Below are positions 1 through 41,260 of a stretch of DNA of 64,000 bases, in pieces. The stretch is from Marsupella aquatica (Eukaryota; Plantae; Marchantiophyta). Position 1 is the stretch's first letter, and each line of letters opens with the position of its first letter. The stretch spans positions 17,350,752 to 17,414,751 of the forward strand of contig OZ316898.1 in assembly GCA_973895155.1 (NCBI GenBank), written 5' to 3'. The notes beneath the pieces are model-generated. The model made no database searches, was not told the DNA's origin, and was given only the letters and a program-made list of their open reading frames with translations. The translations under genes and the position numbers were made by a program.

Positions 1-3000
1 ATCTCCATCCCTAGTATCTTCTTGGCCTGACCCAAGTCCTTCATTGAAAACTCCTTACTCAGCATTGCTTTTAGATGGGCAACATTAGACTTATTCTCAG
101 CCAGGATCAGCATGTCATCCACGTACAGTGCCAGCACAATGTAACCAAAGCATGAGTAATTCTCCACCTCCTTCATGTAGATACAACAATCATGCTCACT
201 CCGTGTGAACCCCTGAGATAACATGAAGGAATCAAAACGCTTATTCCATTGTCTGGGACTCTGCTTCAATCTGTATAACGAGCGCAAGAGCTTACACACC
301 AAGTGTCTGGTCTTCTCGTCAATAAAACCTGAAGGCTGAGTCATACAAATCTCCACATCAAGCAATCCATGCAGGAAAGCAATAATTACATCCATCTGAT
401 CTAACTCAAGATCATAGAATGCCACAATCGCAAGTAAAACATGGATAGTAGCGAGTTTGACAATTGGTGAGAATATCTCCGTGTAGTCCAAGCCCTCCTT
501 CTGGGTGTACCCTTTGGCCACAAGGCGTGCCTTGAAGTGCCATCCTGCTTCTTCTTGTACAACCATCTACATGGAACCAGTGTCTTCCCGCGAGGCATGT
601 CAGTCAAGCGCCAAGTTGAATTCTTCTTCAAAGAATTAATCTCTTTCAACATCGCCTCCATCCACTTATCCTTCTTTGGAGAGGCCATAGCTTCTTCATA
701 GCTAGAGGAATCTCCATCTTCAGTGAGCAAAATAACACCGGGATCATCGTCATGCTCAACAACGTGAACACGAGGATCTGCAAAACCAGATCTATCAGGG
801 GGTTGGCCAAAATTGGCCCTGGTGGAGCACCTTGGTTGAGGAACTGCACCTCTACCAGAGGGACCAGCAGCTTCCTCATCACCACCAAGCTCCACCGTAG
901 TGGGTTCCTCCACCTGTTCCTCCTGAATATCCTAGGGTCGTGACAACCATTCTTTGTCAAAAACAACATTTTTGCTCACAACTGCCTTGCAATCGATAGG
1001 ATCCCACAATTTATAGCCCTTCTGCCCCCAGGACTAAAGCCTAGAAAAATATATTTCTTAGACTTGGGATCCAACTTAGACCTGTGTGTCTGCTCAATGT
1101 GAACATAGGCAGCACAACCAAAAACTTGGAGTCTAGAGTAATCAGCAGGTCTCTTATACCACAACTCAAATGGAGTCTGCATCAACTTAAGTCTACTGTG
1201 CGGTGAAAGATTGTAGACGTATGCAGCTTGGTTGACAGCTTCAGCCCAAAAGTTGTTGGGCAACTTGGACTTACATAGCATGCTACGTGCTTTCTCCAGT
1301 AATGTCCGATTCAACCATTCTGCAACTTCATTCTATTGCGGGGTCTTAGGTACAGTGTAATGATGCTTGAGGCCAAGATCCCGACCAAATTGGTCAAACT
1401 CATTGGACTTATACTCACCACCATTGTCTGACCGAACACACTTTAACTCTTTCCCAGTTTGTAGCTCCACCATTGCTTTCCACTCCTTGAAGATCTCAAA
1501 TACTTGAGATTTCTCCTTCATGTAGTACAGCCAACACATTCGAGAGTAATCATCTACAAACGTCACAAAATATCTGGCTCCACCCAACGACGGTTCCGGC
1601 GCTGGACCCCAAACATCCGAATGTACATACTCAAGAATCTCATGAGAATGGTATGAACTAGAACTGAAACTTACTCTCCTGTGCTTGCCGAAGATGCAAT
1701 CTTCACAGAAAGAGAGTTTACCAGATTGAGCGCCTTGCAGCAAATCTTTGTTTGCCACGGCTGCCAATCCTTTACCACTCAAGTGCCCCAACCATGCATG
1801 CCACAAATCTATGGCTTGTGTGCGACCAGATGTTGAGGGTGCTTCAATTGAAGCAGTCATAGATGACTCTATGGCAGATGTTGCCGCTGCATCCGAATGT
1901 TCCACCACAAAATCCACATGCTCCACTCTAGGAGCAATGACATCTCCTTCCAAGATGTACAAATTATTCTGCCGTAGCGCCTTAATCAAAGATACATCAT
2001 CTTTGACGACAAAGAGCGCACCATTAGGTGCAGTGAAATGAGATCCACCAACTTCCAAAGCACCAAGAGAAATCAAATTCTTAGAGATGTCTGGTATGTG
2101 TCTGACTCCTGTCAGTGCTCGCACAAACATCCGGAATTTGATAATCCTCATGCCAACAATCGCACATCGGACTCCATTTCCAATTTCCACAGTACCGGTA
2201 CAAGGTTGGTAAGTGGAGAAATACGATTGCGTTGGACACACGTGATAAGAGGAACCCGAATCCAACATCCATTTATTGTCATACACAAAATTCATAGCAC
2301 CAATACATAGCACTTCAGCAACATCCTCATTATCAGCAATCACAATACCAGCTGACGATGAGGACGCACGATTGGAAGTAGGACACTTCTGCTTAGACAG
2401 AGAAGGACAATTCCACTTGGTGTGGCCCTTCTCCTGGCAATGCCAACACTGAACTTTCTTACTACGGGACTTAGATTTAGATCTACTGTGTGATTTAGAT
2501 CTAGACTGATCCGTAGTACGCTCCGTCGATCTGCCTCTAACCACTAAGGCAACAGACTCAGTGTCACGGCCAGAAAGTTGTCGCTTGCCCTATTCTGCAA
2601 GAACGGTAGCCTTCACCTCATCCAACTTCAACGTAGACTTGTCATGTGTGATGACCGTCACCAATGTCGAATAGGTCTGAGGAAGCGACATCAACATATG
2701 CATCGCAAGATACTCATCGGTCAACTTGTCTCCCGCCGTGCTCACCTCATGCACAATCTCATCGAAGAGACTGAGGTGATCACGCATGTTGCCACCATCC
2801 TTCAACTTCAACCTGAACAGCCGCTCCAAGTGATAAATGCGAGTAGTCAACGAAGTACTCTAGTATAGCTGAGTAAGCATATCCCAAATCTTCTTGGCAT
2901 TCCGATCCATCCCCAACACGTTCTTGAGAATGTTGTTTGTCAAGAATAACTCAATTGTGCTACACGCTTGTACCAACATGTCCTCCCACTCCTCATCTGT

Positions 3001-6737: not shown

Positions 6738-7132
6738 ATGGCCAACAAGCCGAGGACCAAGGTTAGATTGAATGAATGCGATGATGGGTCTTTTGTATTG
6801 CTTTGGCACAATGCCCAAGCTGAACACGAGGCTCCTCCCATCCAACGTAGGAAAACTTAGACGAGATCCGATCTGATTTCCCTGAGTTTTGTCGTGTCGT
6901 CACACAATATCACAATGCACTCAATCCTGTTGTACCTTTGGAACAAATATTGATTTGTGCTGCATATAGTTATGTGGATAGTGTGATGAAGCGGAAACGC
7001 TACCAAGTGTACACGCACTTGGCTTGGGTATGTGGTTATGCAGAGCGAACAAAGTTCCCAGATGCAGTGGAAGCGGTCATCAAAGCAACATGGCATGACC
7101 CACATGAGGAATTTGTAGGATTTTGTCCATAG
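6738..7132 (+). pseudogene. Probable KolX (P2X7 C-terminal/nanor-like) accessory gene of a Kolobok-type transposon, disrupted
   Basis: EF..(V)..LNPVV then KRKRYQVY..LAWVCG..RTKFPDAVEAVIKATWHDPHEEFVGF resembles the R..AY..W.G..R..P.CV..IR..FP....Y.GF signature. It converges on the Kolobok-like transposase once the P-like insert is removed. Confidence 0.5.
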
Positions 7133-9339
7133 TAGTCTATCATATTGTAATGTCCTTTGCATACTTATAATCTAAATAAATCCCTTCTTTGGGATTGAAC
7201 TCTCGTGGTCGGCAGCACAAGGGGTTCAAATCCCCTTGGGAGTAATTTGCTCACACAGTGATAAGAAAACCCACCTCTTTGGGTCCCTAGACTGTGTAAT
7301 AAGTTATTCCATGCCAAAAGTATGGGCTGAGTATGGGCCAAGTTGAGCCAAGGATTCTGTATGCCCCAAATATGGGTCAAGTCCCAAGTATGGGTCAAGT
7401 GAGAACCAAGGCCTGTGTAAGGGCAGGATTGGTCACTATTGCTTCTAAACATAGCATGTCCTCAATCTTACCCCAGAGTGGCAATGAAAGTATTCTCACA
7501 CCAAAGTTTTTTCATTCTATGTATGCATATGTTTTAGTCTTCCTTGTACTTAGCTTGGTTTCCAACCTAACCTTCTTCTTTTCGGGCAACATGAATTATC
7601 TAAGGTTCATTTCATCTTTTCTTTGTCAATTCTTCTTCATGATATTTTGCTTCATCAATTACCTATCCATTGTTTTCATTATTTGTTACCAATTGCATCT
7701 GTTTTTGGTGGCATACCATGTGTAGGGAGAATCCGAATAGACCCGCAGAGATGGTATCCTACGGTGGGGGATTGTATCGCTTAACATGGCCGGTCACTCC
7801 ACCGCAGAAAAGGAGGGCTCTTCTTTTGAGGCATGATGATATTGTTGCAAAGTTCTCAGCATTTTGTGAGGCCATTGACAACAACCTTGTTGAACTGTTG
7901 CTCTTCATTCTCCATTGCATGCTGAAGTCTTCCACATGTGTGCGGCGTGGTCTGATGTTGAGGCCATTCCTTCTCGTCAATGTCATGTTGTTTCTGAGAA
8001 ATTGGCATCTGTTGCCAAATTCTTGGAAACGACAGCCCTTCTAGGGAATCTTACATCTGTCATACATGCCACCTGGAAGACACTTGGCGAGTAGCATGGT
8101 TGATACTTTGTTCTTCATATTTTTGGAGTTGGGTTTGTACTTGGTTGTTTTATGTGTTTTTAACTTTTTGCTTCTCTTTTCTTCTCTTTTCATTTATCTC
8201 TAAAGTTCTTCAGCGTTCCTTAACTTTGTCAAGTATAGTGTTCATGAGGGTTATTTGTTATAGCATATTTATATGTTTTTGGCATGTGCCTCCTTCCTTA
8301 TCCTTAGGGTTGGAACTCCTGTTGGATGGCAAAAAAAGGGGTTCAAACCCCCTTGGGAGTAATTGTATACTCAATTGTGGATTGTACCTATGTTGTGAGT
8401 ATTCTGTTGGGAAACTATTTAGATATGAACTTTTCTCATCCATTTTAGTTTGGCAGTACAGCCCCATTATCCCAACAAAAATCTTGTCTAGGAAATGGTT
8501 GGTTAGAACTCCAAACTTGGATACACACATTCAAAGCATAGTCCGTGTTATCATAATAAAATTTTGTGTTTTATTTCTCCATAGAAGATTTATGTCATTT
8601 ATCAAACAATTGTGTGTACGAGTTGAGGGTTTAGCAAATTTAAGGTTTACAAATTAATATTTTATCATGTACCATAGTTTTATTTTATTGGACAAAATTT
8701 ATATCTTCAAAAAATTTGGAATCAAATAACAATTAATTCGTGGACCCCCATGTTCATCCAAGGAATGTGTGCATGATGAAATGAAATCAATTTTCAGCAA
8801 GGCAGTGACTGACAGTTTTGAGTCTCCCAATGGTGTTGGTGTGTACTTGTATAAAAGAAAACGCTCAAAAGATAGAGGAGATTTATCAAACAAAAGGTTG
8901 AATGTGGAGGAATTAAGTTTTTTGACGGTTTTTGCTTACACATTATTGGAGAAATTGTGTTTTTACCATTCTTGATTGATAATTTGTGAGTTACATTGAA
9001 CATTACCGCCACAAGACAGACTGGAGGACAACACTCAGCTGTTGGCAAAGAGCGCTTGTTGATTCGGTGGGAAGAACACATAAAATGAACGAGCCATCAC
9101 TTCACACGAAGGATTTGTAGTTTTTTTATTTAAGAAAACTATGGTGTGAGGGGGAGACCAACAATTGTTTCTTTGACATAAAGGTTGCATTTGGCGTCAA
9201 CCTGTCTTCACAGTGAGCTTCAGTTGAAGACTAGAGGGATGCAAACAATTCAAGTCAGGAAACAAGCATTGTGGACAAGCCATGACGATGTGATCAAAGA
9301 ATCAATTTGCAACGGCTAAGTTTTTGACAATGACGAGAT

Positions 9340-9790
9340 TGTGATATCTCTTAATCGAGAAAGGGTTTCCAATGAGCCTCAGATTGACAAATTTTGTAAA
9401 GTTCTAAATGAGTTTTTGAATTTCTTTGCCTTTCCAATGAGTGTGAGTATAAGAAATTTTGATCATGAGTTCATGAATTCTTTTCGCTTTCCAACATTGA
9501 GTTCAACATTGTCAAATTTTGTCACGATACTAGAGAGATCATGAGGTTTTCAATCTCTAATGTGTGACATTGAGACTATTTGTCAAGAATTAGAGAGATC
9601 ATGAGTATATGAAATTCTCTAGCTTTCCAATGAACCTAACATTGATAGATTTTGTCAAGTACTAAGGAGATGATGAGTTTTTTATTTTACTCTAGCTTTC
9701 CAATGAGAGGTCTAAGTATGTTTCTAAATCTTGATCTTGAGTTTTCCAATGAATCAAACATTGACAAATTTTATCAAGTATTAAGGAGAT
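9340..9790. repeat. Degenerate tandem repeats (TTTCCAATGA...ATTGACAAATTTTGTCAAG motif)
   Basis: The motif recurs about 5-6 times with divergence; AT-rich, probably the interior of a transposon. Confidence 0.6.
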
Positions 9791-10353
9791 TGATTATTTA
9801 GTTTTACAATGTGAAGCCAAAGGGGTTTTAACTATGTACATTTCTATCAATTGGTTTTTTCAAACTTGCAAACAATTAAAAAATACAAGCATTTTGATAT
9901 AAAACACTTATACATCTTTGACAAACATCATAATGGTAACTTTATTTTACTAAATGACATCTCTTCCTTTGTATTTTAGTTTTTTTACATTTAATATTTA
10001 CGGCATGGCGCCCCAAAAATTACATTACTTTTGCCACAAACAGGAATGTGCATGTTTGTCATTGTTAAAAGTAGGATCATTCCTGTTTGTGGCTGGTTGT
10101 GATGATGTGGAGCAACCTCGTGGCAGAGAATTTGCAAGAGACTTCTCATGGGGGTCCGTAAACAAATCGTGGGAAGGGTAAAACCTTTTTTCATATTATG
10201 AGACAAAAGTTGCATAATTAGTGTATTACAATGCTCTACATGCTAAATACTAAAAACTCCATGTGCCCCCTACAACATAATGGAAGTAAAACGTCTCCAG
10301 GTCTTACTTGGATGTCTTCAAAGAAACAACCCTCTGGATTTATAACATACAAT

Positions 10354-10649
10354 CTCGGGGGTTTCACTTCCACAAAAATGGCATATCACGTGCGACGAAG
10401 GATAGGGTCATTTTATTGGTTGTAAGGGAAGACTTAAGAATTTTTGTAGAAAAACAATAGGGTCTTTGAAATTCAATTTTGAGACTTATAAGAACATTAG
10501 GGCCTTTTAATCCAATTTTTGGAATATTCCAAGAATATTCCAACTTTATAGGGGTTAAAAAATATTATTGTTTTCTTACATTTTAGGGGGTCCAAGGCCT
10601 AAAAACATCGCAGGTGATGGGGAGGTCCCCATGTAGTGAGACCCCCGAG
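10354..10649. mobile_element. 296-bp MITE of the P-like family
   Basis: Ends are CTCGGGGGTTTCACT and AGTGAGACCCCCGAG; perfect 8-bp TSD CATACAAT (10346-10353 and 10650-10657). Confidence 0.95.
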
Positions 10650-11429
10650 CATACAATCAATTAATGAAACAATTAGACCACTTGTCAACATAAATAAAAA
10701 CTAAGGTATCTAGTCATTTAACCCACCCTCAATGCAATGTCGCTAAACAAAAACAAATGTTATTTTAAGGTCCAAATATAATTACCTCATGTATGTTGGT
10801 TTAGGTCTAAGGCTCGGGGGTCTCACTGTATGGAGGACCCCCCCATCACCTGCGACGTTTTCATGCCTAGACCCCCATACTTATTAAGTTGAAATTTTTT
10901 TTTCCTCCCCCTTTCTTTCTTCTAAGAGTCTAAAATCCAATTTGTATTGCCCCTATAATTTGTGAAGTAAAGTGTCACATATCAATAAAAAATGCCTAGA
11001 AAGAAAAGATAAGTCTATGCCAGTACCTTGTGAAGTCGTATGTCAAACATGGCACGCCCTGCAACAGCACGCCCTGCAACAGTTCTTGCACCTTTTTCGA
11101 CCTCAAACTTTCATCATTTCAATGCATCATTTATATTGTGTACCTAAAGGTCATCCCAATATTGTGTACATAAGTGGGATGGGCTTTAAGGTCACAACAT
11201 GAATAATCAATTCCATCAACAATCAATTTGAAACCAATCACATACTCCATCCATACTCCATTGAAAACTTCTGCTGAGAGATGTAACATGTGAGGAGGGG
11301 AATTGAACCCCTAATTGAGAAAGGATCTCAAGTTGCCAATCCGTCACCCCCTATCCTATCCCACTACACCCACTAATATAAACAAAACAAAATATATATA
11401 CTCTCAAAAAGTAAACAGTAGCATAACAT

Positions 11430-14400
11430 TCATACCATTGTTTGAAGATACTGATCCAATGCATGTCTATCTATTGGATCCAAGACATAGATACGATCCA
11501 TAACCCCTTCTTTCATGGTTAAGCTAACACTAGCAATGACCATTTCAATATCCATCCATTTCAAATCAGTGGTATCATATCTGAATTCACTTTTTCTCTT
11601 ACCAATAGGACTATACCAATTTAACAACAGTTCACAAATGCTACCTGATTGCCCTGCAAGTGGAGTGAGCCTATCCATCAAATCAATTGGTGTCCGACAA
11701 TTGCCCCACCTACTACCATACTTTTGTCTCATTTGGACAATCCGACCCAACCAAAAATATTTCTTACCTGCTGAGATTGCCTCCACCGCAGCCTTATTCT
11801 TTTCTCCCTTTTTTTTCCAGATCTAGTACTTGGAGCAGGATTATCATCAGACTCAAATGCAATTGCACAATCAGTGCCAACATCAACAAAACATGAGTTA
11901 GGATTGGCTTCTTGCACTTTTCTCTTGCCAGTACTATAGTATAGCACTTGTTTCACCCTTGTCAGCCTATCTTTTGACAAATGTGGATTGCCTACCAGTT
12001 GGCTTACCAGAGTGGATTTGTAAATCACCTTGCCTTCATAAGTAACAGTAGGCACTACCTTGGTACGATTCTGCACATTAGTTACAGCATGGACAACTGA
12101 TCCAAACACATGCCGAACTTCATGGCCTAATGTCTCAAGCTCATCTGTGGGGTCTACATCAAACTGTATATCATCTCTGTGTACATCATCTGAATGCATG
12201 TCAGGAATAACAATGGGATCTGGTTCTGTTAACCATGCATCTATTCTATTCAGATCATCCTCAGGATCTTCCAATTCATGAAATTCTCCAGTTGGGCGAA
12301 GGCCTATGTCTGGTGGTTGGTGCTCTACTTGCTCCTCAGAATCATTGCAAACAATTGCTTCCTTCAGAACCACCTCTAGTGGCCAGGTCTCACTTTCCAC
12401 AACCCAAGGACATGTCCACCATCTCTTTCTAGCTGCTGGTAAGGAACTTCGTGGAGACATCTGCAATCGATGCATAAGATCCTTAGCAGCAACAAAACCT
12501 TCTTTAAGGGCTGCAACCACTAATTCATTAGTCTCAATGAGAGAATAGTCAAGTAGATTTGGTGCTTCTTCCCCTTCCCCTATAGGATGAATCTTCCCCC
12601 ATACATGATCTTGCTTCTTATGTAAACGACCTATCTTCAAGCCTTCTGGTCCATATTCCAGGGCAGCAAGCCGATTCAGTCCAACAACACTATCCAACAG
12701 AGAGCCAAAATCATAATTTCGCTCATGGCCACTCATGCCTCCTACCTTGCTGAAGAAAATCTCACAACAATCCGAACCTAACAAGTGAAAAGGAACACCT
12801 AGATGTGGGAACTTATCTCGAAAGACACAAATTAACAGCACAATGAAATGACATGACATGTTAACATCATGAAAGGCCTGAATAGACATCATGTCTTTCT
12901 CAGTGTGTGCTGCAAAGTTCCCACCCACTGAATGGTCACCAAACCTCAACCACAATCTCCACAAACGTAGAAAGAACGAAACCTTGGATGCTAACACAAT
13001 ACGGGACCTCAAGTCATGAACTGGAGAAAAGAAAATATCTAAGTAATCTGCACAAATCTCCAAGTACAACTGAGTTCCTAAACTTCGTTCATGTCGTACA
13101 TCTCTCCTCTCATACATATCTTTCAGACATTGCTGCACTCTTCTTGCTGCTATTCGTTGTGGACCTGCCCAATTCTGCCGGTCAGTCCTATTCACATCAT
13201 CCCAAGCCATGCCATGTTCATGAATTGGATAATGATTGTAGACATTAGCTACATAAGATAAAGATGCATGTTGATCTCCTAGCACCAGTAAAAAAGACAC
13301 TTTGTCTAAGGGGTTTATCATCTTTTTCCCATTATGAGGTTGGTCTTGGTCACCAAAGCCATACAAATCCCCATTTGGTAGAATTGAAACAGAGTAAGCC
13401 CACCCTTCCCACCCAACTCCGTACCTTGGGTATGATCCATTCTGCCCTCTGTAATCTTCCAGCATCAACTTTCGGCGACGTGCATCACCATCACTAGCAT
13501 GTCCAAGCAAAGGGCCTACCATAGCTCTACAATATTCATCCCAAAAAGCCTTTAACTGGACCCAATGCTCTCGTACCCAAGAAGTTGTGAATTTATTACA
13601 AGTTGGAAGTGCACACACAGCCAATTTAGGTAAGGACTCATGCAGAGGATTCACAATCACAACTCGAGCATACATGCACTTGGGGCATTGTTCAAATGTA
13701 CTTACAATTTTATCATACCCCTCATCACCTTCACCAACTAGAATTTCCAAACCATAGGAGCATACATGCTGCTCCGAAGGTCCATAGAAACCAATGAGAG
13801 TATCATACTTTGCCTCCCACCTGAAACACAAACATGCAATTTTTCAATATCACAGCAATTCCAGCCAAGTGCTACTTGTAAAGTCATTAAAAAAACAATT
13901 GGAAAAATGTCCAGTTCCAATTACCTAGGGCGTTCTTTGATCCTTGTTTCATCCTCAGCAAAGATAACAGGCACATCCCCCTCAATGCCCAATGAGTGCT
14001 TTGCAGCAGACAACACTCTAGCAATCTCCTGAAAGGTTTCCTTTCGTAACCCAGTTCGAAAAGGTGTGAGTTTTGCTCTATCACGTTTTAGGGTCACAAG
14101 GCTAGGGGCTGTCAAGTTTCATGCAAAACAATGAGCAACTTGACGGCCCCCAAATTGGAACATAGCCTGAGCAATAGCTCGAGTCCTATTACTGTAACGA
14201 TTACCTTTTGGCTTCCTGCCTAAATTGCGAGCTACATCCTTCAAGAAATCCCACAAACCCTCCTTACCACCAAATGCACCATTCCTGTGTCCATTCAAAA
14301 TACTCCTAAGAAACAATCTCAAATCCTTCCTGTCTGCTGCAACTCCTAACAACTCCTCTAGTTTTCTTTTCCTGGTGCTCAAGGCACATACTTTCTGAGC

Positions 14401-15027
14401 CTGCAAAGCTAACAACCAATGCTTTTTTTGTCGCACAGAGTTCAGCTTGTGCACTTGATCTCTTAACTCTGGGTTGGTCAAATAATCCAATCGTATACCA
14501 CCAGCAATGGTTTGGCTCCCTCTGTGGACTACTGCTTCCGCTTCCCTGTGCACCCGTCCACGAAAATCATCTTCTAGTGTTATAGAATCACATTCACTAC
14601 AAGTTAGATTTTCAAATCCTCCTCCATTCTGTGATAACCTCAAGCAATCCTTGTGTCTAAAACAACCTGCTATACTCACAACACAGTCTCTTCTTGGATG
14701 GAAAACATCCAAGCAACAACTTGGCTCACAATGCCATGTAATTCCCCCAGACTGATCATCCAAAATGCCGGCAATATCATAAGATATACCCTTCCATAAC
14801 ACTCGAGGCACACCTCTCTCTACCCATAATCCCCAGCAAAGCAAACTCAGACCAAGATCAACAGATTCACACACACCTGAACCTAAACCTGAACTGCTGC
14901 CTGTTCGGGACCCATCATCTTTAAAGAACTTCAAAATCCCGCTCTGACCAGGATGTAGGTCCCTAGAATCCAAGAGCACTTGATTGCAGCAACAGCGTAG
15001 CTCAGCTCCGGACCGGATTGCAGGCAA
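11430..15027 (-). pseudogene. P-element/THAP9-like DDE transposase (>1100 codons reconstructable), with one nonsense codon and one frameshift
   Basis: Motifs in P-transposase order: PSLVTLKR; AEDETRIKERPR|WEAKYDTLIGF (first D, joined across GT-AG intron 13924-13821); ASDGD (second D); DQPHNGKKMINPL (DxxH..K); DRQN; GSDCCEIFFS (E). In-frame TGA at 14119-14121; frameshift near the T-run at ~11810. The true start is not resolved. Confidence 0.8.
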
Positions 15028-15359
15028 TGCAACTCACAGATTGCAACACAATGCAGCCCAGCTCAGGTTGCAGCCTAGTAACCAGATTGCAGCCCAACTC
15101 CCAACCCGATCGCAACCCAACTCCCAACCCGATCGCAGCCCACCTTGTAGCCCACCTCGCAGCCCAACTGCAACTGATTGAAAGCACTTCATCTCAATCA
15201 GCAAAAAGTGAAAAGCACAAACAAAGCAAGCAACTTACTTCCTCTTGACTAAGCCTACGAATTGGAACATGACTTCAATCCATAGAAAGCCTGATTGTCA
15301 AAGCAAGAAATGAAGAGCACTCCCATACCAGAGTTGATAGAGCAGCACTCTGTTTGAGC

Positions 15360-16450
15360 AAGCAGCGTAGCACTTGCAACCCTCACAGCGGAGCACTCCG
15401 ACCCTAGCTTGCCTCCCTCACAGCGCAGCACTCACCTCCTTCGCAGCGCAGCACTTCCCTTGATCATAGTGCAGCACTCACCTCTGTCGCCTCCCTCGTA
15501 GCGCCTCCCTTGCCTCCCTCACAACACAGCTTTTGCCTCCCTTGTAGCGCCTCCCTTATAGCGTAGCTTTCGCCTCCCTCATAGCGCCTCGCTCGCCTCC
15601 CTCACAGCACAGCTTTCACCTCCCTCGCAATCCTCACAAAGCAATAGCTCCCGGCAGCAGTGCAAGAGTGGAACACTCAGCACTCACCATCCTCGGCTCC
15701 CTTGACTCCCTCGCAACAGCTCATGGTGCTGCGCAACACTAGCTTTGGACCACACTCCCGTTAGCAGCGCAGGCAACACTCCCTTTGGAGTTTAAAAAAA
15801 ATTACCGACATTGCTATATGGTCCACCAAGCTCCAGCCACCAAGCCAGCAGCCACCAAGCTCGGGAGCCTCTATCGATCGCTCCTAGCCTCCAGCACGCG
15901 AGATCAGACAGCGAGCTTCCACCAAGCTCCAGCCACCAAGCTCCAGCCACCAAGCCAGCAGCCACCAAGCTCACGAGCCTCTATCGATCGCTCCCAGCCT
16001 CCAGCTCCCAAGCCCAGCTCGCGAGATCAGACAGCAAGATCAAATCAGACGAGCAGCATCGAGAGTGAAGACGAAATCAAATCAGACGAGCAGCATGAAG
16101 TGCAGTCCACCAAGCTCGCGAGCCTCTATCGATCGAGACAGCGACATCAGATCGAGAGCCGCAACCGCCCTTTGCCCCCTTGGATTTGATCGTCTAAACC
16201 CCAGCCCTTCGCGAGCCCTTCCAGCCGTTTTCCAGCCCTTCCCCAGCCCTTCGCAAGCCCTTGCAGCCCTTCGCCAGCCCTTCCCCAGCCCTTCGCCCTT
16301 CGCCAGCCCTTTGACCTGCGCCAGCCCCTTCTCGTCGACCCCTTGCCCTTCGCGAGCCCTTCCCCTTGCCCCCACTGCATTGGATACCCCTCACATTGGA
16401 TACCCATCCCCTTGCCCCATTGCATTGGATACCCCTCCCCTTGCCCCATT
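15360..16450. repeat. C-rich short degenerate tandem repeats in the 5' region of the P-like element
   Basis: Repeated GCCTCCCTC, CCACCAAGCTCCAG, CAGCCCTT and TTGGATACCCC units; these explain the many overlapping low-complexity ORFs. Confidence 0.8.
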
Positions 16451-17002
16451 GCATAGGGAACTTTTTTATCTCCCGCATAGGACAAAATAACTTTTCATGT
16501 TCCAGGATGAGTATGCTATATGGACAACGTCAAGGCAAGGAATGAACTGGGCTTGGCCAACAAAGAGTGGAGGGAAACAGTCGCCCTAACATGGGACATA
16601 TTCAAAATGGTCCCGGGCCCCAAAACCCTAGACATGTGGCCAGGTCCTTGAAAGCCGGCCCCACTCACGTATATACCCCATCCAAAATTCTTGCCACCTC
16701 AAATATGTGGACTACCCGATTGAGTAGCCCCTAATTTGAAATGAGTGCCACGTGGCCCAATCCCATAGTGACACGTGTATACTCTTTTTTCTTGTAGCAT
16801 ATTACCCTATCTTTCCTCAACCCATTCCATGGAAGTGGACCCCCAAAAAAAAATCCTATCATTCTTTAAAGTGTGTTTATGAATAAATTGGACCCTATTG
16901 TTCTTACACAAATCTTCTTAAGTCTTTCCTATAATCTAATAAATGGACCCTATACTTTCTCGCACGTGATGTGCTGTTTTCACGGAGTGAGACCCCCGAG
17001 GT

Positions 17003-18279
17003 CTAAGGTACTCCATAGATACGTAGACTTGTTTGCTCCTTCCAGCTTGTGGTACGATCCACTAATACTCGTGAACGAGAGGGTCTATCGCGAACAGCTG
17101 TGTTTACTGCTCGATGATCACGAACCTTCCAAATATGTCTCCTAATATTTTCATTCCAGTCCATAGCAGTACAACATAAACGCGCATCGTGAGTGGCTGG
17201 AAAATGAATACGCTTTATGGCATACTTGCCCATTACAGAATGGAATGTTTTAGACATAAAGTTCTCACGAGCCATGGTATAAAATTGCATTTTTTCTGGC
17301 TTTATGTACTTGGTCATGAAAGCTTTCATGGCCTTGTGAGTTTCTCCATCTGCATTCCAAAAGAAAAACTGGTTATTTATCTTATAATCACTATGTCATG
17401 CAACATCCAAAACATAATATAAATTTGTCTCAATGTAAAATCAATGAATATTTGCAGCACGGTATATGTTTGACCTCTCTCATAGTACAAATCCAGTTGT
17501 AAAGCATTAGGTTCTCCAAGATGCTGACAAGGTCTATCAGATAGTGTCATGCACTTTTCATGGTCACCAGCCCAATGATCTGCACAATTCCCTAACTCAA
17601 AAGCCAAGGATTCACTGTCTCCACTCATGCATTGCAAAGTAGTGAAAAAACAAGTTATAAACATGCTATAAATTAAATTTCATCTACAAAATATCTATCA
17701 AGGTATTCCAAGGATTATATAAATCAAGGCAGCATTTCAAGCAATCTGCAAAACTTTTGTAATATGGCACTGTACCTGTTTTTACATGTTCTGGAACACA
17801 CATAGAACCAGGTCTTAAATTTGTTTGCCAAATTATGCTCCGCTAACTCTGGAAACTTGAGACCACGGGTGGCAATGGGTACAAGCTCCTCCTCAGGAAG
17901 CCCACGCAAATCCGCAACTCGATGAATTAACGCTTCCTTTCTCAAGTTAGAGTAGCCTCTAATACCCCTATCCTTCAACTAGTCTTTCAATTTTTTATTT
18001 GTAACTCCTTGCAAATCAAAACGGGATGTCACAGTGTCTATGTCGACAGTCAGGGTAAATGTGGCACTTGCCAACTTGTCCACAAATTTTCTCACCAAAT
18101 TTTTAGCCTTGTGCCATAAGTTTTTCTGATTTATAAATCTCATGTCCTCAATGATTCTATCTATGGTACTTTTATCATCATGGATAACCTCTTTGATAAC
18201 CACTCCTGCTTCCGTGAGACTATCTAGCACCCTCTTTGCCCCTATTTCTTCCATGTACCAAGAATTATTCTCCTCTCTT
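17003..18279 (-). pseudogene. Kolobok-type DDE transposase, 3' half, degenerate and intron-containing
   Basis: NSWYMEEIG, VIHDDKS, (D>N)LWHKAKN, NCADHWAGDHEKC and MS(E>K)TFHSVMGKYAIKRIHF...ARLCCTAMDWNEN match Kolobok motifs (S..ME..G; D.WH..K; H....H..C; E.FHS...Y.PKR..F...AR..A.D.NEN). In-frame stop at 17979; cut at 18279 by an LTR insertion. Confidence 0.75.
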
Positions 18280-33960: not shown

Positions 33961-35098
33961 ACTTCCATTTCTTTGTCTTGCTTATATTTTCTTTGTCTTG
34001 CCTTGATTTCTTGCCTCTCATGTATTTCTTTGTCTAACCCTGACATCTTTCGCTAGCTGCAACATCTAAGCTTGCCTTGACATAGTTGCCTCACCTTGAT
34101 ATTTTTGCCTTGCTTGGACATCTTCTATGCAACGTAGCTCCCTGCATTGGGCTCATAGTAACAACATAATAAGGGGATTGGCTAGGACATTAAAGACTCA
34201 CTTAATTCTAGGTTCGTCCCCAGGTTGGTCCAAGACATCAAAACAAACTCACCTGATGATTAGTTAAGGTAACTCTATATTCAACTTGTTAAATTAAGTA
34301 AGACAGTGCCCGAGACAGTGACTATATTTTGTTGTATCTAAAAATAATAATCATGATTCAAGAACTAGTAAACAACTCAATAAATTTAGAAAGTGACCCT
34401 GGATATGATAGTGTTTGCAATAGACCCATGCTTGTTTTTTGTAATGGACCCATGCTCCGCTTATTTTTAGAAATGGATCAAATGTGTTTGATGACCAATT
34501 CTTGGGTAATTTTAGTTGCAGGCCCATTTCTTCTATAAATTTATCATCTGATTCATGCCCGCCTAATTCTAGCGGAGAAACCATATATGCTTGGTTAATT
34601 ATAACAGCAGACCCATGTTCAGCACATGTGAGATTATAACTTTGGACCGGAGGCATGGGTTATGAGCTAGTCAAAACTCACTGTCTGAAAACTCTTATCA
34701 GATATAATCTACCAAATGGCTTAAGTGTTAGTCTCAAAGAGGTTGGATGAGAGAGAAAACATACGCTCCTGCTTAATAAATGGATTTGTGAAAACTTTAG
34801 TGTAAACACTAAAACTCTTTTTTTCTAATGAAATGCATTACTCTGGAAAAGGGTAGAGGGTTAGAATAGACCGGATCACTCTTATCTAATATTGCTGAGT
34901 TATAGCTAGTTAGTGGCTGAGCAAAACTTGAACTTGATCAATATCTTTCCCCTTTCTCAAGCCCTTTCCACTGAATTGAACACATTTGAGCTCACTGCTA
35001 AATCCCACTATCCAACAATTACTTGAAACTATTTAGGATATATGTATGATTCTGCCACTGCTTTCTTATGGGCAGATCCTGATACAGTAACAATCTAC

Positions 35099-35384
35099 CT
35101 CGGGGGTCTCACTATATGGGGACCTCCCCATCGCCTGCGACGGTTTTAGGCCTCGGACCCCCTAAAATGTAAGAATTTTTTTTAATTTTTTAACCCCTAT
35201 AAAGTTGGAATATTCTAAAAATTGGATTAAAAAGACCCTAATGTTCTTATAAGTCTCAAAATTGAATTTAAAAGACCCTATTGTTCTTTTACAAAAATTC
35301 TTAAGTCTTCTCTTAGAACCAATAAAATGACCCTATCCTTCGTCGCACATGATATGCCATTTTTGTGGAAGTGAAACCCCCGAG
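35099..35384. mobile_element. 286-bp MITE of the P-like family, in inverse orientation to 10354-10649
   Basis: Ends CTCGGGGGTCTCACT / AGTGAAACCCCCGAG; perfect 8-bp TSD CAATCTAC (35091-35098 and 35385-35392); alignable along its length with the reverse complement of 10354-10649. Confidence 0.95.
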
Positions 35385-35897
35385 CAATCTACTAACCTTT
35401 CAGTTTGGGAAGGCAAGCCACACTTGACTGCGTTGCAAACAAATAAAAAAATTGTGCACATGATGTCAAAGTTTAACTTGTTTGAAGCTTGTGCATTGTA
35501 CATTTTGAAAGTCCAAATGTCAGATGTGAATAGAGAAGAAAATAGGTGCACGCTTGAGCAGGATGTGATGGTCCAAACTGTCATGTCAACTCATCTGAGG
35601 CCTGAGCTTGCCTACACCCACCAAGCTTTCTCAACATGCACACAATGTCATGAGAACACAAATCACAAGCATTTGGCTCACTTGAGTAGTCCATTGTCTA
35701 CAAACACACACTGGAGACAATCTCCAATCCAATCACCATGTGGACAAGTCTAGGCTAAGCAGCCTAGCTATAAAACACGATGGTTACATGCAGGAGCCCA
35801 CTCAGATTTGACTGTAGGATTCATTATATGAAATAGGCTAGTATGATTAGGCAAATTTCCAAAGCGGCCACTATCTAATTTTTGGTGAAACAATGAT

Positions 35898-39856: not shown

Positions 39857-41260
39857 ATGACAATCTGGCCGATTCTGTTGACCTCTGGATTAGTCTCCCC
39901 GCTGCTCCTCGTGTTCTTCGCTGTGATATATACGGGGCAGTACAGAAGGCGAGCACAGAGAGTCGTAGGGTTTTTCCATCCCTTCACGAACGATGGAGGT
40001 GGTGGAGAGCGCGTGCTGTGGTGTGCCGTTCGGGCCACTCAGGAGTCCGTCGATCTCAGCGTAGTGATTTACACTGGTGACCCGGCCACCCCTGAGTCTC
40101 TTGCAGCTCGTGCCCTTGAGAAATTCGGCATCACTCTCCGGGAAAACCCGCTGGTTGTGCAGCTCCAGAAGAGGAAGTGGGTGGAGGCTGCAACATGGCG
40201 GCGGTTCACTCTGATAGGCCAGAGCTTGGGGTCAATTGTTTTGGGATGGGAGGCTTTAACGAAACTCACGCCCCTGCTGTTTATTGATACCAGTGGGTAT
40301 GCCTTCACGTACCCATTGGCCCGCCTCTTTGGTTGTAAAGTGGCCTGCTACACCCATTACCCTACCATTAGCTCTGACATGCTCCAGAGAGTGAAGAACC
40401 GGAAGTCTTTGTACAACAATGACGATAGAATTGCTAAGAGTGTGTTGTTGTCAAGAGGGAAATTGTTTTATTACAAGCTTGTGGCTTACTTGTATGGATG
40501 GGCAGGCAGCTGCACTCACTTGGCCATGGTGAATGGGTCTTGGACTCGGGATCACATTGAGAAATTGTGGAGAATTCCGAAGAGGATTGTTAGGGTTTAT
40601 CCTCCATGTGACACGGGCACTCTGCAGGAATTCCCCCTAGAGCGGTCTGGGTTTGATCCATTCATCATCTCTGTGGCTCAGTTCCGCCCAGAAAAGGCTC
40701 ATGCCCTTCAATTGTCAGCTTTTCAGTTGGCTCTGGAGAATCTACAAGATGAAATGAATGGGGAACTTCGCAGACCACGTCTAAAGCTTGTTGGCAGCTG
40801 CAGAAATGTCGAAGATGAGCAGCGTGTTGAAAATCTTAAGCGAATGTGTTTTGAATTGGGGATTGAGGAGGATGTGGATTTTTGTGTGAATGTGTCCTAC
40901 GAGATTCTTGTGAATATGCTGGGTAACGCCATGGGTGGTTTGCACACCATGATTGATGAACATTTCGGCATCAGCGTCGTAGAGTACATGGCAGCTGGGG
41001 CCATTCCAATTGCACATAGGTCGGCTGGACCCAAACAAGATATCGTTGTAAATGAGGGCTTGCAGCAGACCGGTTTCCTAGCAGAAACGTTAAATGAGTA
41101 CGCAGAAGCCATTGTTAAAGTGCTCACTCTTCCCAAAGAGGAGCGTTTGCATATGGCCAGTGCTGGTAGGAGGCGGGCTTCGAGATTTTCGGAGGCAAGA
41201 TTCGATGAAGATTTCAAGGCAGCCATGAAGATTCTGTATAGAAGCTTGGACTCTACTTAA
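39857..41260 (+). CDS. ALG11: GDP-Man:Man3GlcNAc2-PP-dolichol alpha-1,2-mannosyltransferase (GT4), 467 aa, single coding exon
   Basis: N-terminal TM; [22 protein letters not shown]; [10 protein letters not shown]; [11 protein letters not shown]; [11 protein letters not shown]; [19 protein letters not shown]; [15 protein letters not shown]-rich leader lies at ~39395-39520. Confidence 0.97.

Follow-up and report, generated by a model that had tools for sequence, protein, structure and literature searches.

A defective transposon copy with a probable THAP-less, P-type transposase gene in the leafy liverwort Marsupella aquatica

Here we describe a 6.2 kb transposable element from the liverwort Marsupella aquatica, located at 10813-17000 of a 64,000-nucleotide stretch of contig OZ316898.1 (the window, to which all coordinates below refer). 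The element is very probably a recently inserted, non-autonomous copy of a cut-and-paste transposon, 5'-deleted and carrying one nonsense codon and one frameshift, whose transposase belongs to a divergent, Pfam-invisible and THAP-less lineage of the P/THAP9 type. A preliminary description of the same DNA had proposed a P-like transposon at this place; its account of the ends, of the coding motifs and of the kinship with P agrees with the results below, while its view of the copy as structurally complete does not.

The span of 10813-17000 keeps both ends of the element. The left terminal inverted repeat (TIR; CTCGGGGGTCTCACT, 10813-10827, plus strand), the element's 3' end when read along the transposase gene, pairs at 15 of 15 positions with the right TIR (16986-17000, minus strand), its perfect reverse complement. 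Identical copies of an 8-bp target site duplication (TSD; GTCTAAGG) lie directly outside the TIRs at 10805-10812 and 17001-17008, and both the perfect TIRs and the perfect TSD are as the preliminary description had given them. With two or fewer mismatches allowed, the 15-mer TIR is found at six sites in the 64-kb window, compared with 0.1 expected, and the four sites beyond those of the large element are the ends of two MITEs (miniature inverted-repeat transposable elements). MITE 1 (296 bp, 10354-10649, minus strand) is in opposite orientation to the large element and is flanked by the TSD CATACAAT at 10346-10353 and 10650-10657, and MITE 2 (286 bp, 35099-35384, plus strand) is flanked by the TSD CAATCTAC at 35091-35098 and 35385-35392. 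The large element has its ends in common with the MITEs, over ∼70 bp at the left end in both MITEs and ∼170 bp at the other end. All three family members in the window carry a perfect 8-bp TSD, within the 7-8 bp range of the P superfamily. The element at 10813-17000 is a real transposon, and the three perfect TSDs attest to a real family with 8-bp duplications and recent movement.

A 15-nt motif, GACCCTAWYGTTCTT, occurs three times in each MITE with a spacing of 40-55 bp, and as subterminal direct repeats (one exact and two degenerate) at 16803-16905 of the large element (plus strand), with 18 matches against 5.2 expected. These repeats may serve as binding sites of the transposase. A gap of only 163 bp separates MITE 1 from the oppositely oriented large element, and local hopping or a preference for certain target regions could account for this closeness. 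No target consensus can be derived from as few as three TSDs.

The boundaries also bear on the possibility that the locus is a Kolobok-like two-gene transposon extending over ∼6738-18279. Kolobok transposases are distant kin of those of P and hAT, and there is no solved Kolobok structure for comparison, which leaves some room for this idea. Kolobok elements make TTAA duplications, however, and usually encode a THAP domain, whereas perfect TIRs and an 8-bp non-TTAA duplication bound the present element at 10813 and 17000, and likewise both MITEs (GTCTAAGG, CATACAAT and CAATCTAC). The open reading frame (ORF) at 8100-8657 lies outside these boundaries and has no Pfam match, and we regard a Kolobok-like transposon as very improbable.

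The transposase gene lies on the minus strand and amounts to ∼1140 codons summed over its frames, in agreement with the more than 1100 codons given previously. Each piece in the window was searched separately, and the fold was modelled on a natural full-length homologue, P0007 (1073 aa), which is 35-43% identical to the window pieces. The AlphaFold model of P0007 has a mean predicted local distance difference test score (pLDDT) of 79.8, with a core above 90. In a Foldseek search of the PDB, the first match to this model is the Drosophila P transposase strand-transfer complex (6p5a_A, E 5.8e-11, template modelling (TM) score 0.71), followed by RAG1 (E 8e-5), Transib (E 7e-3) and Hermes (E 1.2e-2, TM 0.27). 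VIA-align gives Z 24.6 and 24.4 for P0007 against 6pe2_A and 6p5a_A, with 417 and 410 residues aligned, respectively. The best of these matches covers 417 of 456 residues at a root-mean-square deviation (rmsd) of 4.2 and runs over residues 123-566 of the chain, comprising the helix-turn-helix (HTH), RNase H and guanosine triphosphate (GTP)-binding insertion domains. The other transposases score far lower by the same method (Transib Z 10.8, RAG1 9.7, Hermes 8.1-8.5 with rmsd 7.7-9.4).

These values separate the element from the hAT superfamily (Hermes, Ac). An 8-bp TSD, an insertion domain that is all-helical within an RNase H fold, and a C/DxxH-type motif are all shared with hAT elements, but the structural match to Hermes is far weaker than that to P transposase (best Z 8.5, at rmsd 9.4). 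In addition, no hAT dimerisation domain (PF05699), BED finger or other hAT Pfam match is found in the window pieces or in the relatives scanned, and the ends are unlike usual hAT termini. Assignment to hAT is in our view scarcely credible, and the earlier preference for P over hAT stands.

A second line of evidence comes from the window's own 700-aa piece, whose feature neighbours in the ESM-Atlas are clusters of PF21787, PF21788 and PF21789 (TNP-like RNase H N, GBD and RNase H C), of THAP9 type. The neighbour score is 0.94 with 189 of 256 features shared, and all ten best neighbours with a Pfam family are TNP-like. Weak matches to PF12017 (P transposase HTH) occur in four of 36 family members, the best-placed being P0244 with 23.7 bits against a cut-off of 23. 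The motif series listed in the preliminary description is recovered on the minus strand as AEDETRIKERPR and WEAKYDTLIGF (split by a GT-AG intron), SDGD, DQPHNGKK and SDCCEIFFS. The underlying patterns EDET, SDGD, D..H..KK and G.D..E...S..G are at least 90% conserved in a diverse alignment of the family, are all present in the window, and sit on the expected strands and helix of the P0007 model. Conservation also extends to an Asp three positions ahead of the putative catalytic Glu; D528 and E531 of P transposase have the same spacing, and D528 is a GTP ligand (PMC7776569).

Several points weigh against this assignment. Pfam yields no match of any kind at E ≤ 1 on the four transposase pieces of the window, P/THAP9 models included; of the TNP-like and P models (PF21787, PF21788, PF21789, PF12017 and PF12596), none matches these pieces and PF12017 alone matches in relatives. 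PDB sequence and family-profile searches return no match to P transposase or any other transposase. A THAP domain finds no Pfam match in the window pieces, in the ∼50 relatives scanned or in the N-terminal ORF of L001, the genomic contig of the closest relative. The P-type fold is that predicted for the homologue P0007 rather than for a joined window protein, and the proposed equivalence of the catalytic and GTP-binding residues is drawn from motifs and spacing rather than from a superposition.

The same gaps feed the main residual rival, which is that the element belongs to a separate superfamily (Novosib or an unnamed one) having only an ancient fold in common with P, and so is not taxonomically P. 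Novosib likewise gives 8-bp TSDs, and its first known host was a green alga. Its catalytic domain is poorly defined in the literature (PMC5751038), which leaves room for overlap. Besides the missing Pfam TNP-like and THAP matches on the window pieces, and the missing PDB sequence match to P transposase even with profiles, the predicted N-terminal DNA-binding module is different and there is an extra C-terminal domain. On the other side, Z 24.6 is reached across 91% of the P chain of known structure, with the helical insertion domain peculiar to P included, and is more than twice the value for any other transposase. One relative (P0244) exceeds the PF12017 cut-off, and the ten best Pfam-bearing ESM neighbours are without exception TNP-like. 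A separate superfamily is on this balance unlikely, and the evidence supports placing the element in the P superfamily, as a THAP-less and divergent land-plant variant.

Read in the direction of transcription, the gene begins with an N-terminal coding remainder (13925-14973, minus strand) that encodes a Cys-rich beta module, a long helix of coiled-coil type, helices resembling an HTH and, with AEDET, the first of the catalytic strands. This part is split by an in-frame TGA (14119-14121), at a position occupied by Leu or Arg in relatives, into the pieces 14973-14122 (Cys-rich region) and 14118-13925, the latter ending in ..FAEDETRIKERP(R). A GT-AG intron of 104 nt (13821-13924, minus strand), read from the sequence, lies between ..AEDETRIKERP(R) and WEAKYDTLIGF. 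No spliced joint is seen in the sequencing runs, which look like DNA. The main exon (11811-13820, minus strand) is a 700-aa ORF encoding the remaining RNase H-like catalytic domain (SDGD, DQPH..KK and the D..E in SDCCEIFFS), the helical insertion domain and an acidic linker. The conserved C-terminal domain (..YFWLGRIVQMR..NWY..; 11433-11810, minus strand), located by tblastn with P0001, P0007, P0008 and P0025, is in a frame different from that of the core, and the transposase stop codon is at 11430-11432. An A8 homopolymer run (11809-11816, minus strand) marks the frameshift between the catalytic core and the C-terminal domain; it is one base longer in contigs of other copies (runs X3 and X5). 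An intron at ∼11760-11810 in place of the frameshift was considered and rejected, homologous coding sequence following directly after GTAAGA.

The closest relative is the Logan genomic contig L001, with 66-67% protein identity. Its N-terminal ORF runs for 690 aa without interruption and is followed by an intron placed as in the window. The window has a counterpart for L001 residues 347-690 only, beginning at 14973, which leaves its copy short of ∼346 N-terminal codons, and this copy has no ATG upstream of the conserved N-terminal domain. No TIR is found in contig L001, which probably ends inside the element. Contigs of other copies depart from the window sequence behind 14970 and continue with sequence encoding L001-type ..SGKRGRPK.., and in X1, X3 and X5, the runs with real depth, the word depth behind 14970 drops by a factor of several to more than ten. 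Other copies are without the frameshift and run on into N-terminal coding sequence. The copy in the window is a 5'-deleted or rearranged derivative, and with the TGA, the A8 frameshift and the missing start codon and N-terminal codons, the term "structurally complete" does not hold for it. When the window copy is compared with L001, the ratio of nonsynonymous to synonymous substitution rates (dN/dS) comes to 0.12 for the core and 0.15 for the N-terminal part (dS ∼2), which indicates that the gene has been under purifying selection and that the defects of this copy are recent.

The rest of the element on the 5' side (14974-16985, minus strand) is non-coding, with degenerate tandem repeats and no counterpart of the first 346 codons of L001. 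The C-rich degenerate tandem repeats extend over ∼1.4 kb (15080-16454), with periods of 11, 23, 31, 42, 46 and ∼110, and their depth is far below that of the transposase core in the runs with real depth.

The accessory domains on either side of the catalytic core differ from those of known P transposases. The AlphaFold2 model of 14122-14868 (249 aa, pLDDT 88.9) consists of a beta-rich module, a 34-residue helix and an HTH-like helical region. The beta-rich module contains three near-invariant cysteines (C..x14..CxxC) and a conserved CWG, and corresponds to the CWGLW...CFRHKDC...CSEC series noted earlier. Compared with the PDB, the N-terminal model matches neither THAP nor any other solved fold, the hit list being dominated by the long helix. 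A THAP domain is undetected in this head, and we make no claim of a new fold; the earlier statement that a different Cys-rich head takes the place of a THAP finger is consistent with both the Pfam scans and the search with the N-terminal model. The extra C-terminal domain reported previously (WLGRIVQMR...WY) is likewise present, is conserved in homologues, and is structured and beta-rich in the P0007 model, with a weak resemblance to the Eaf3 chromo-barrel (Z 6.4). ESM neighbours of the window's C-terminal piece gave no lead. An assignment of this domain as a PTM/DIR17 Tudor was rejected, the PF21743 match of P0085 lying in an extra domain past the end of the window-type protein.

Homologues of the transposase are numerous. 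A word-indexed search with the 700-aa piece finds ∼100 homologues. Among those with a species name, the best matches are to hypothetical proteins from two liverworts, Riccia sorocarpa and R. fluitans, ∼50% identical, with the fern Adiantum nelumboides also represented. Full-length family members have 1070-1220 aa. With a 36-sequence profile, the number of cluster representatives retrieved out of 1.84 billion is 5889 at E ≤ 0.001 and 996 at E ≤ 1e-30. Very many environmental eukaryotes also carry the lineage. With the divergent member P0244 as query, an uncharacterised protein of the brittle star Amphiura filiformis is found, and the family is therefore not plant-specific. The earlier proposal of a divergent plant P-like lineage holds in that the fold is P-like and the divergent family occurs in liverworts and a fern; its restriction to plants does not hold, given the brittle star and the environmental eukaryotes.

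The family is also present in many copies. Contigs from runs labelled as three organisms contain near-identical copies at very high word depth, which indicates a multi-copy family. For 11400-15300 of the window, many contigs in runs X1-X6 are at least 95-99% alike, with the runs labelled as three different organisms; the near-identical copies across these labels could be due to close relatives, mislabelled samples or recent spread.

Family members vary outside the common part of the protein. Positions 1199-2236 of L001 encode a 346-aa N-terminal extension with two CxxC...H...H zinc-finger-like motifs and no Pfam match, and shorter members such as P0007 begin just ahead of the Cys-rich module. 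Beyond the common C-terminus, different modules are appended: a PTM/DIR17 Tudor in P0085 (1160-1217), a SAP in P0255 (1288-1323) and a C1 in P0260 (1385-1434). These differing modules, as recognised in the protein sequences, hint at lineage-specific tethering to chromatin or DNA.

The host is identified by an intronless ALG11 alpha-1,2-mannosyltransferase gene at 39857-41260 (plus strand; 467 aa), whose identity is 88% with the Calypogeia fissa protein and 69% with the Marchantia one. These identities place the contig in a leafy (jungermannioid) liverwort, and the land-plant origin assumed at the outset is thereby secured. Elsewhere in the window, a 403-aa ORF at 1333-2544 (minus strand) with Pol beta-barrel, GAG-pre-integrase and integrase core is a fragment of a Ty1/copia-type long terminal repeat retrotransposon.

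By analogy with the P transpososome, whose structure is solved, a mechanism of transposition can be proposed. The Cys-rich N-terminal module and the HTH region would bind the subterminal GACCCTA.. repeats, and the long helix would pair two subunits. The RNase H-like D-D-E site would cut the ends of the element and join them to the target, with an 8-bp stagger giving rise to the 8-bp duplications. The residues predicted to be catalytic are the D in AEDET, one D in SDGD and the E in CCEIFFS; the DxxH motif and the helical insertion domain lie between them. The insertion domain may hold GTP as in P, with the Asp three residues before the putative catalytic Glu being kept. The extra beta-rich C-terminal domain may tether the enzyme to chromatin. 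Neither this copy nor the two MITEs can make the enzyme, and intact copies elsewhere in the genome would have to move them in trans.

In organization, the liverwort element resembles P, THAP9 and Pdre elements in its 8-bp TSD and short TIRs; TIRs have 13 bp in the zebrafish P-like element and 31 bp in P (PMC7776569). As in P, the transferred strand has G as its last base at the 3' end. A DNA-binding head, a coiled coil, an HTH, a split RNase H domain that contains a helical insertion domain, and a C-terminal part follow each other in the same order, the succession of THAP, leucine zipper and HTH in P being mirrored by the Cys-rich module, helix and HTH-like region of the window. The D-x-x-E spacing is that of D528 and E531, and internally deleted and MITE derivatives occur in both. 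The differences from P are as follows. The liverwort element is without THAP and has instead a Cys-rich beta head, to which L001 adds two upstream CxxC...H...H motifs; the window pieces have no Pfam TNP-like match; a structured extra C-terminal domain contrasts with the acidic, unresolved C-terminal domain of P; the ends begin with CT, compared with CA in P; and the host is a land plant. The protein is also longer, with ∼1100-1500 aa compared with 751 aa for P transposase. Within the green lineage, the P and Novosib elements and MITEs of Chlamydomonas, the sole records there in the literature consulted and compared by published description, are similar in host lineage and in belonging to the 8-bp TSD class, and differ in that their host is a chlorophyte alga.

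Previous surveys place P elements elsewhere. A review of P transposition treats P and THAP9 as animal elements (PMC7776569), and a fungal survey found P only in Pucciniales and Allomyces (PMC5751038). Among 21 green-lineage species surveyed for MITEs in 2022, C. reinhardtii was the sole one recorded with those of P and Novosib (PMC9641971), and the P-MITE database lists them in "lower plants" only (PMC3964958). A 2025 screen of 1007 plant genomes, in which P was sought with Pfam models, reported active TIR elements of seven other superfamilies only (PMC12973397); such a Pfam-based screen would miss the present family because the family has no Pfam P/THAP9 match. These plant-wide surveys of TIR transposons and MITEs, without P in land plants, bear out the earlier remark that P is not among the usual land-plant superfamilies (PMC12973397, PMC9641971, PMC3964958).

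Going further, the family may be an undescribed deep clade of the P superfamily, THAP-less, with its own zinc module and a structured C-terminal domain, which has moved very recently in leafy liverworts, may still do so, and is represented by intact autonomous copies at other places in this genome. This broader proposal is tentative, and we give it somewhat less than an even chance. If it is true, the family would give land plants their first P-type cut-and-paste system, possibly a GTP-dependent one, that could be studied and made into tools.

As a divergent, THAP-less P-superfamily variant in a land plant, the element widens the range of hosts of the P superfamily as well as its sequence space. 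It also offers a natural experiment on the swap of a DNA-binding head, with a Cys-rich module in place of THAP, while the MITEs and near-intact copies make the family a candidate endogenous transposon system for liverwort genetics.

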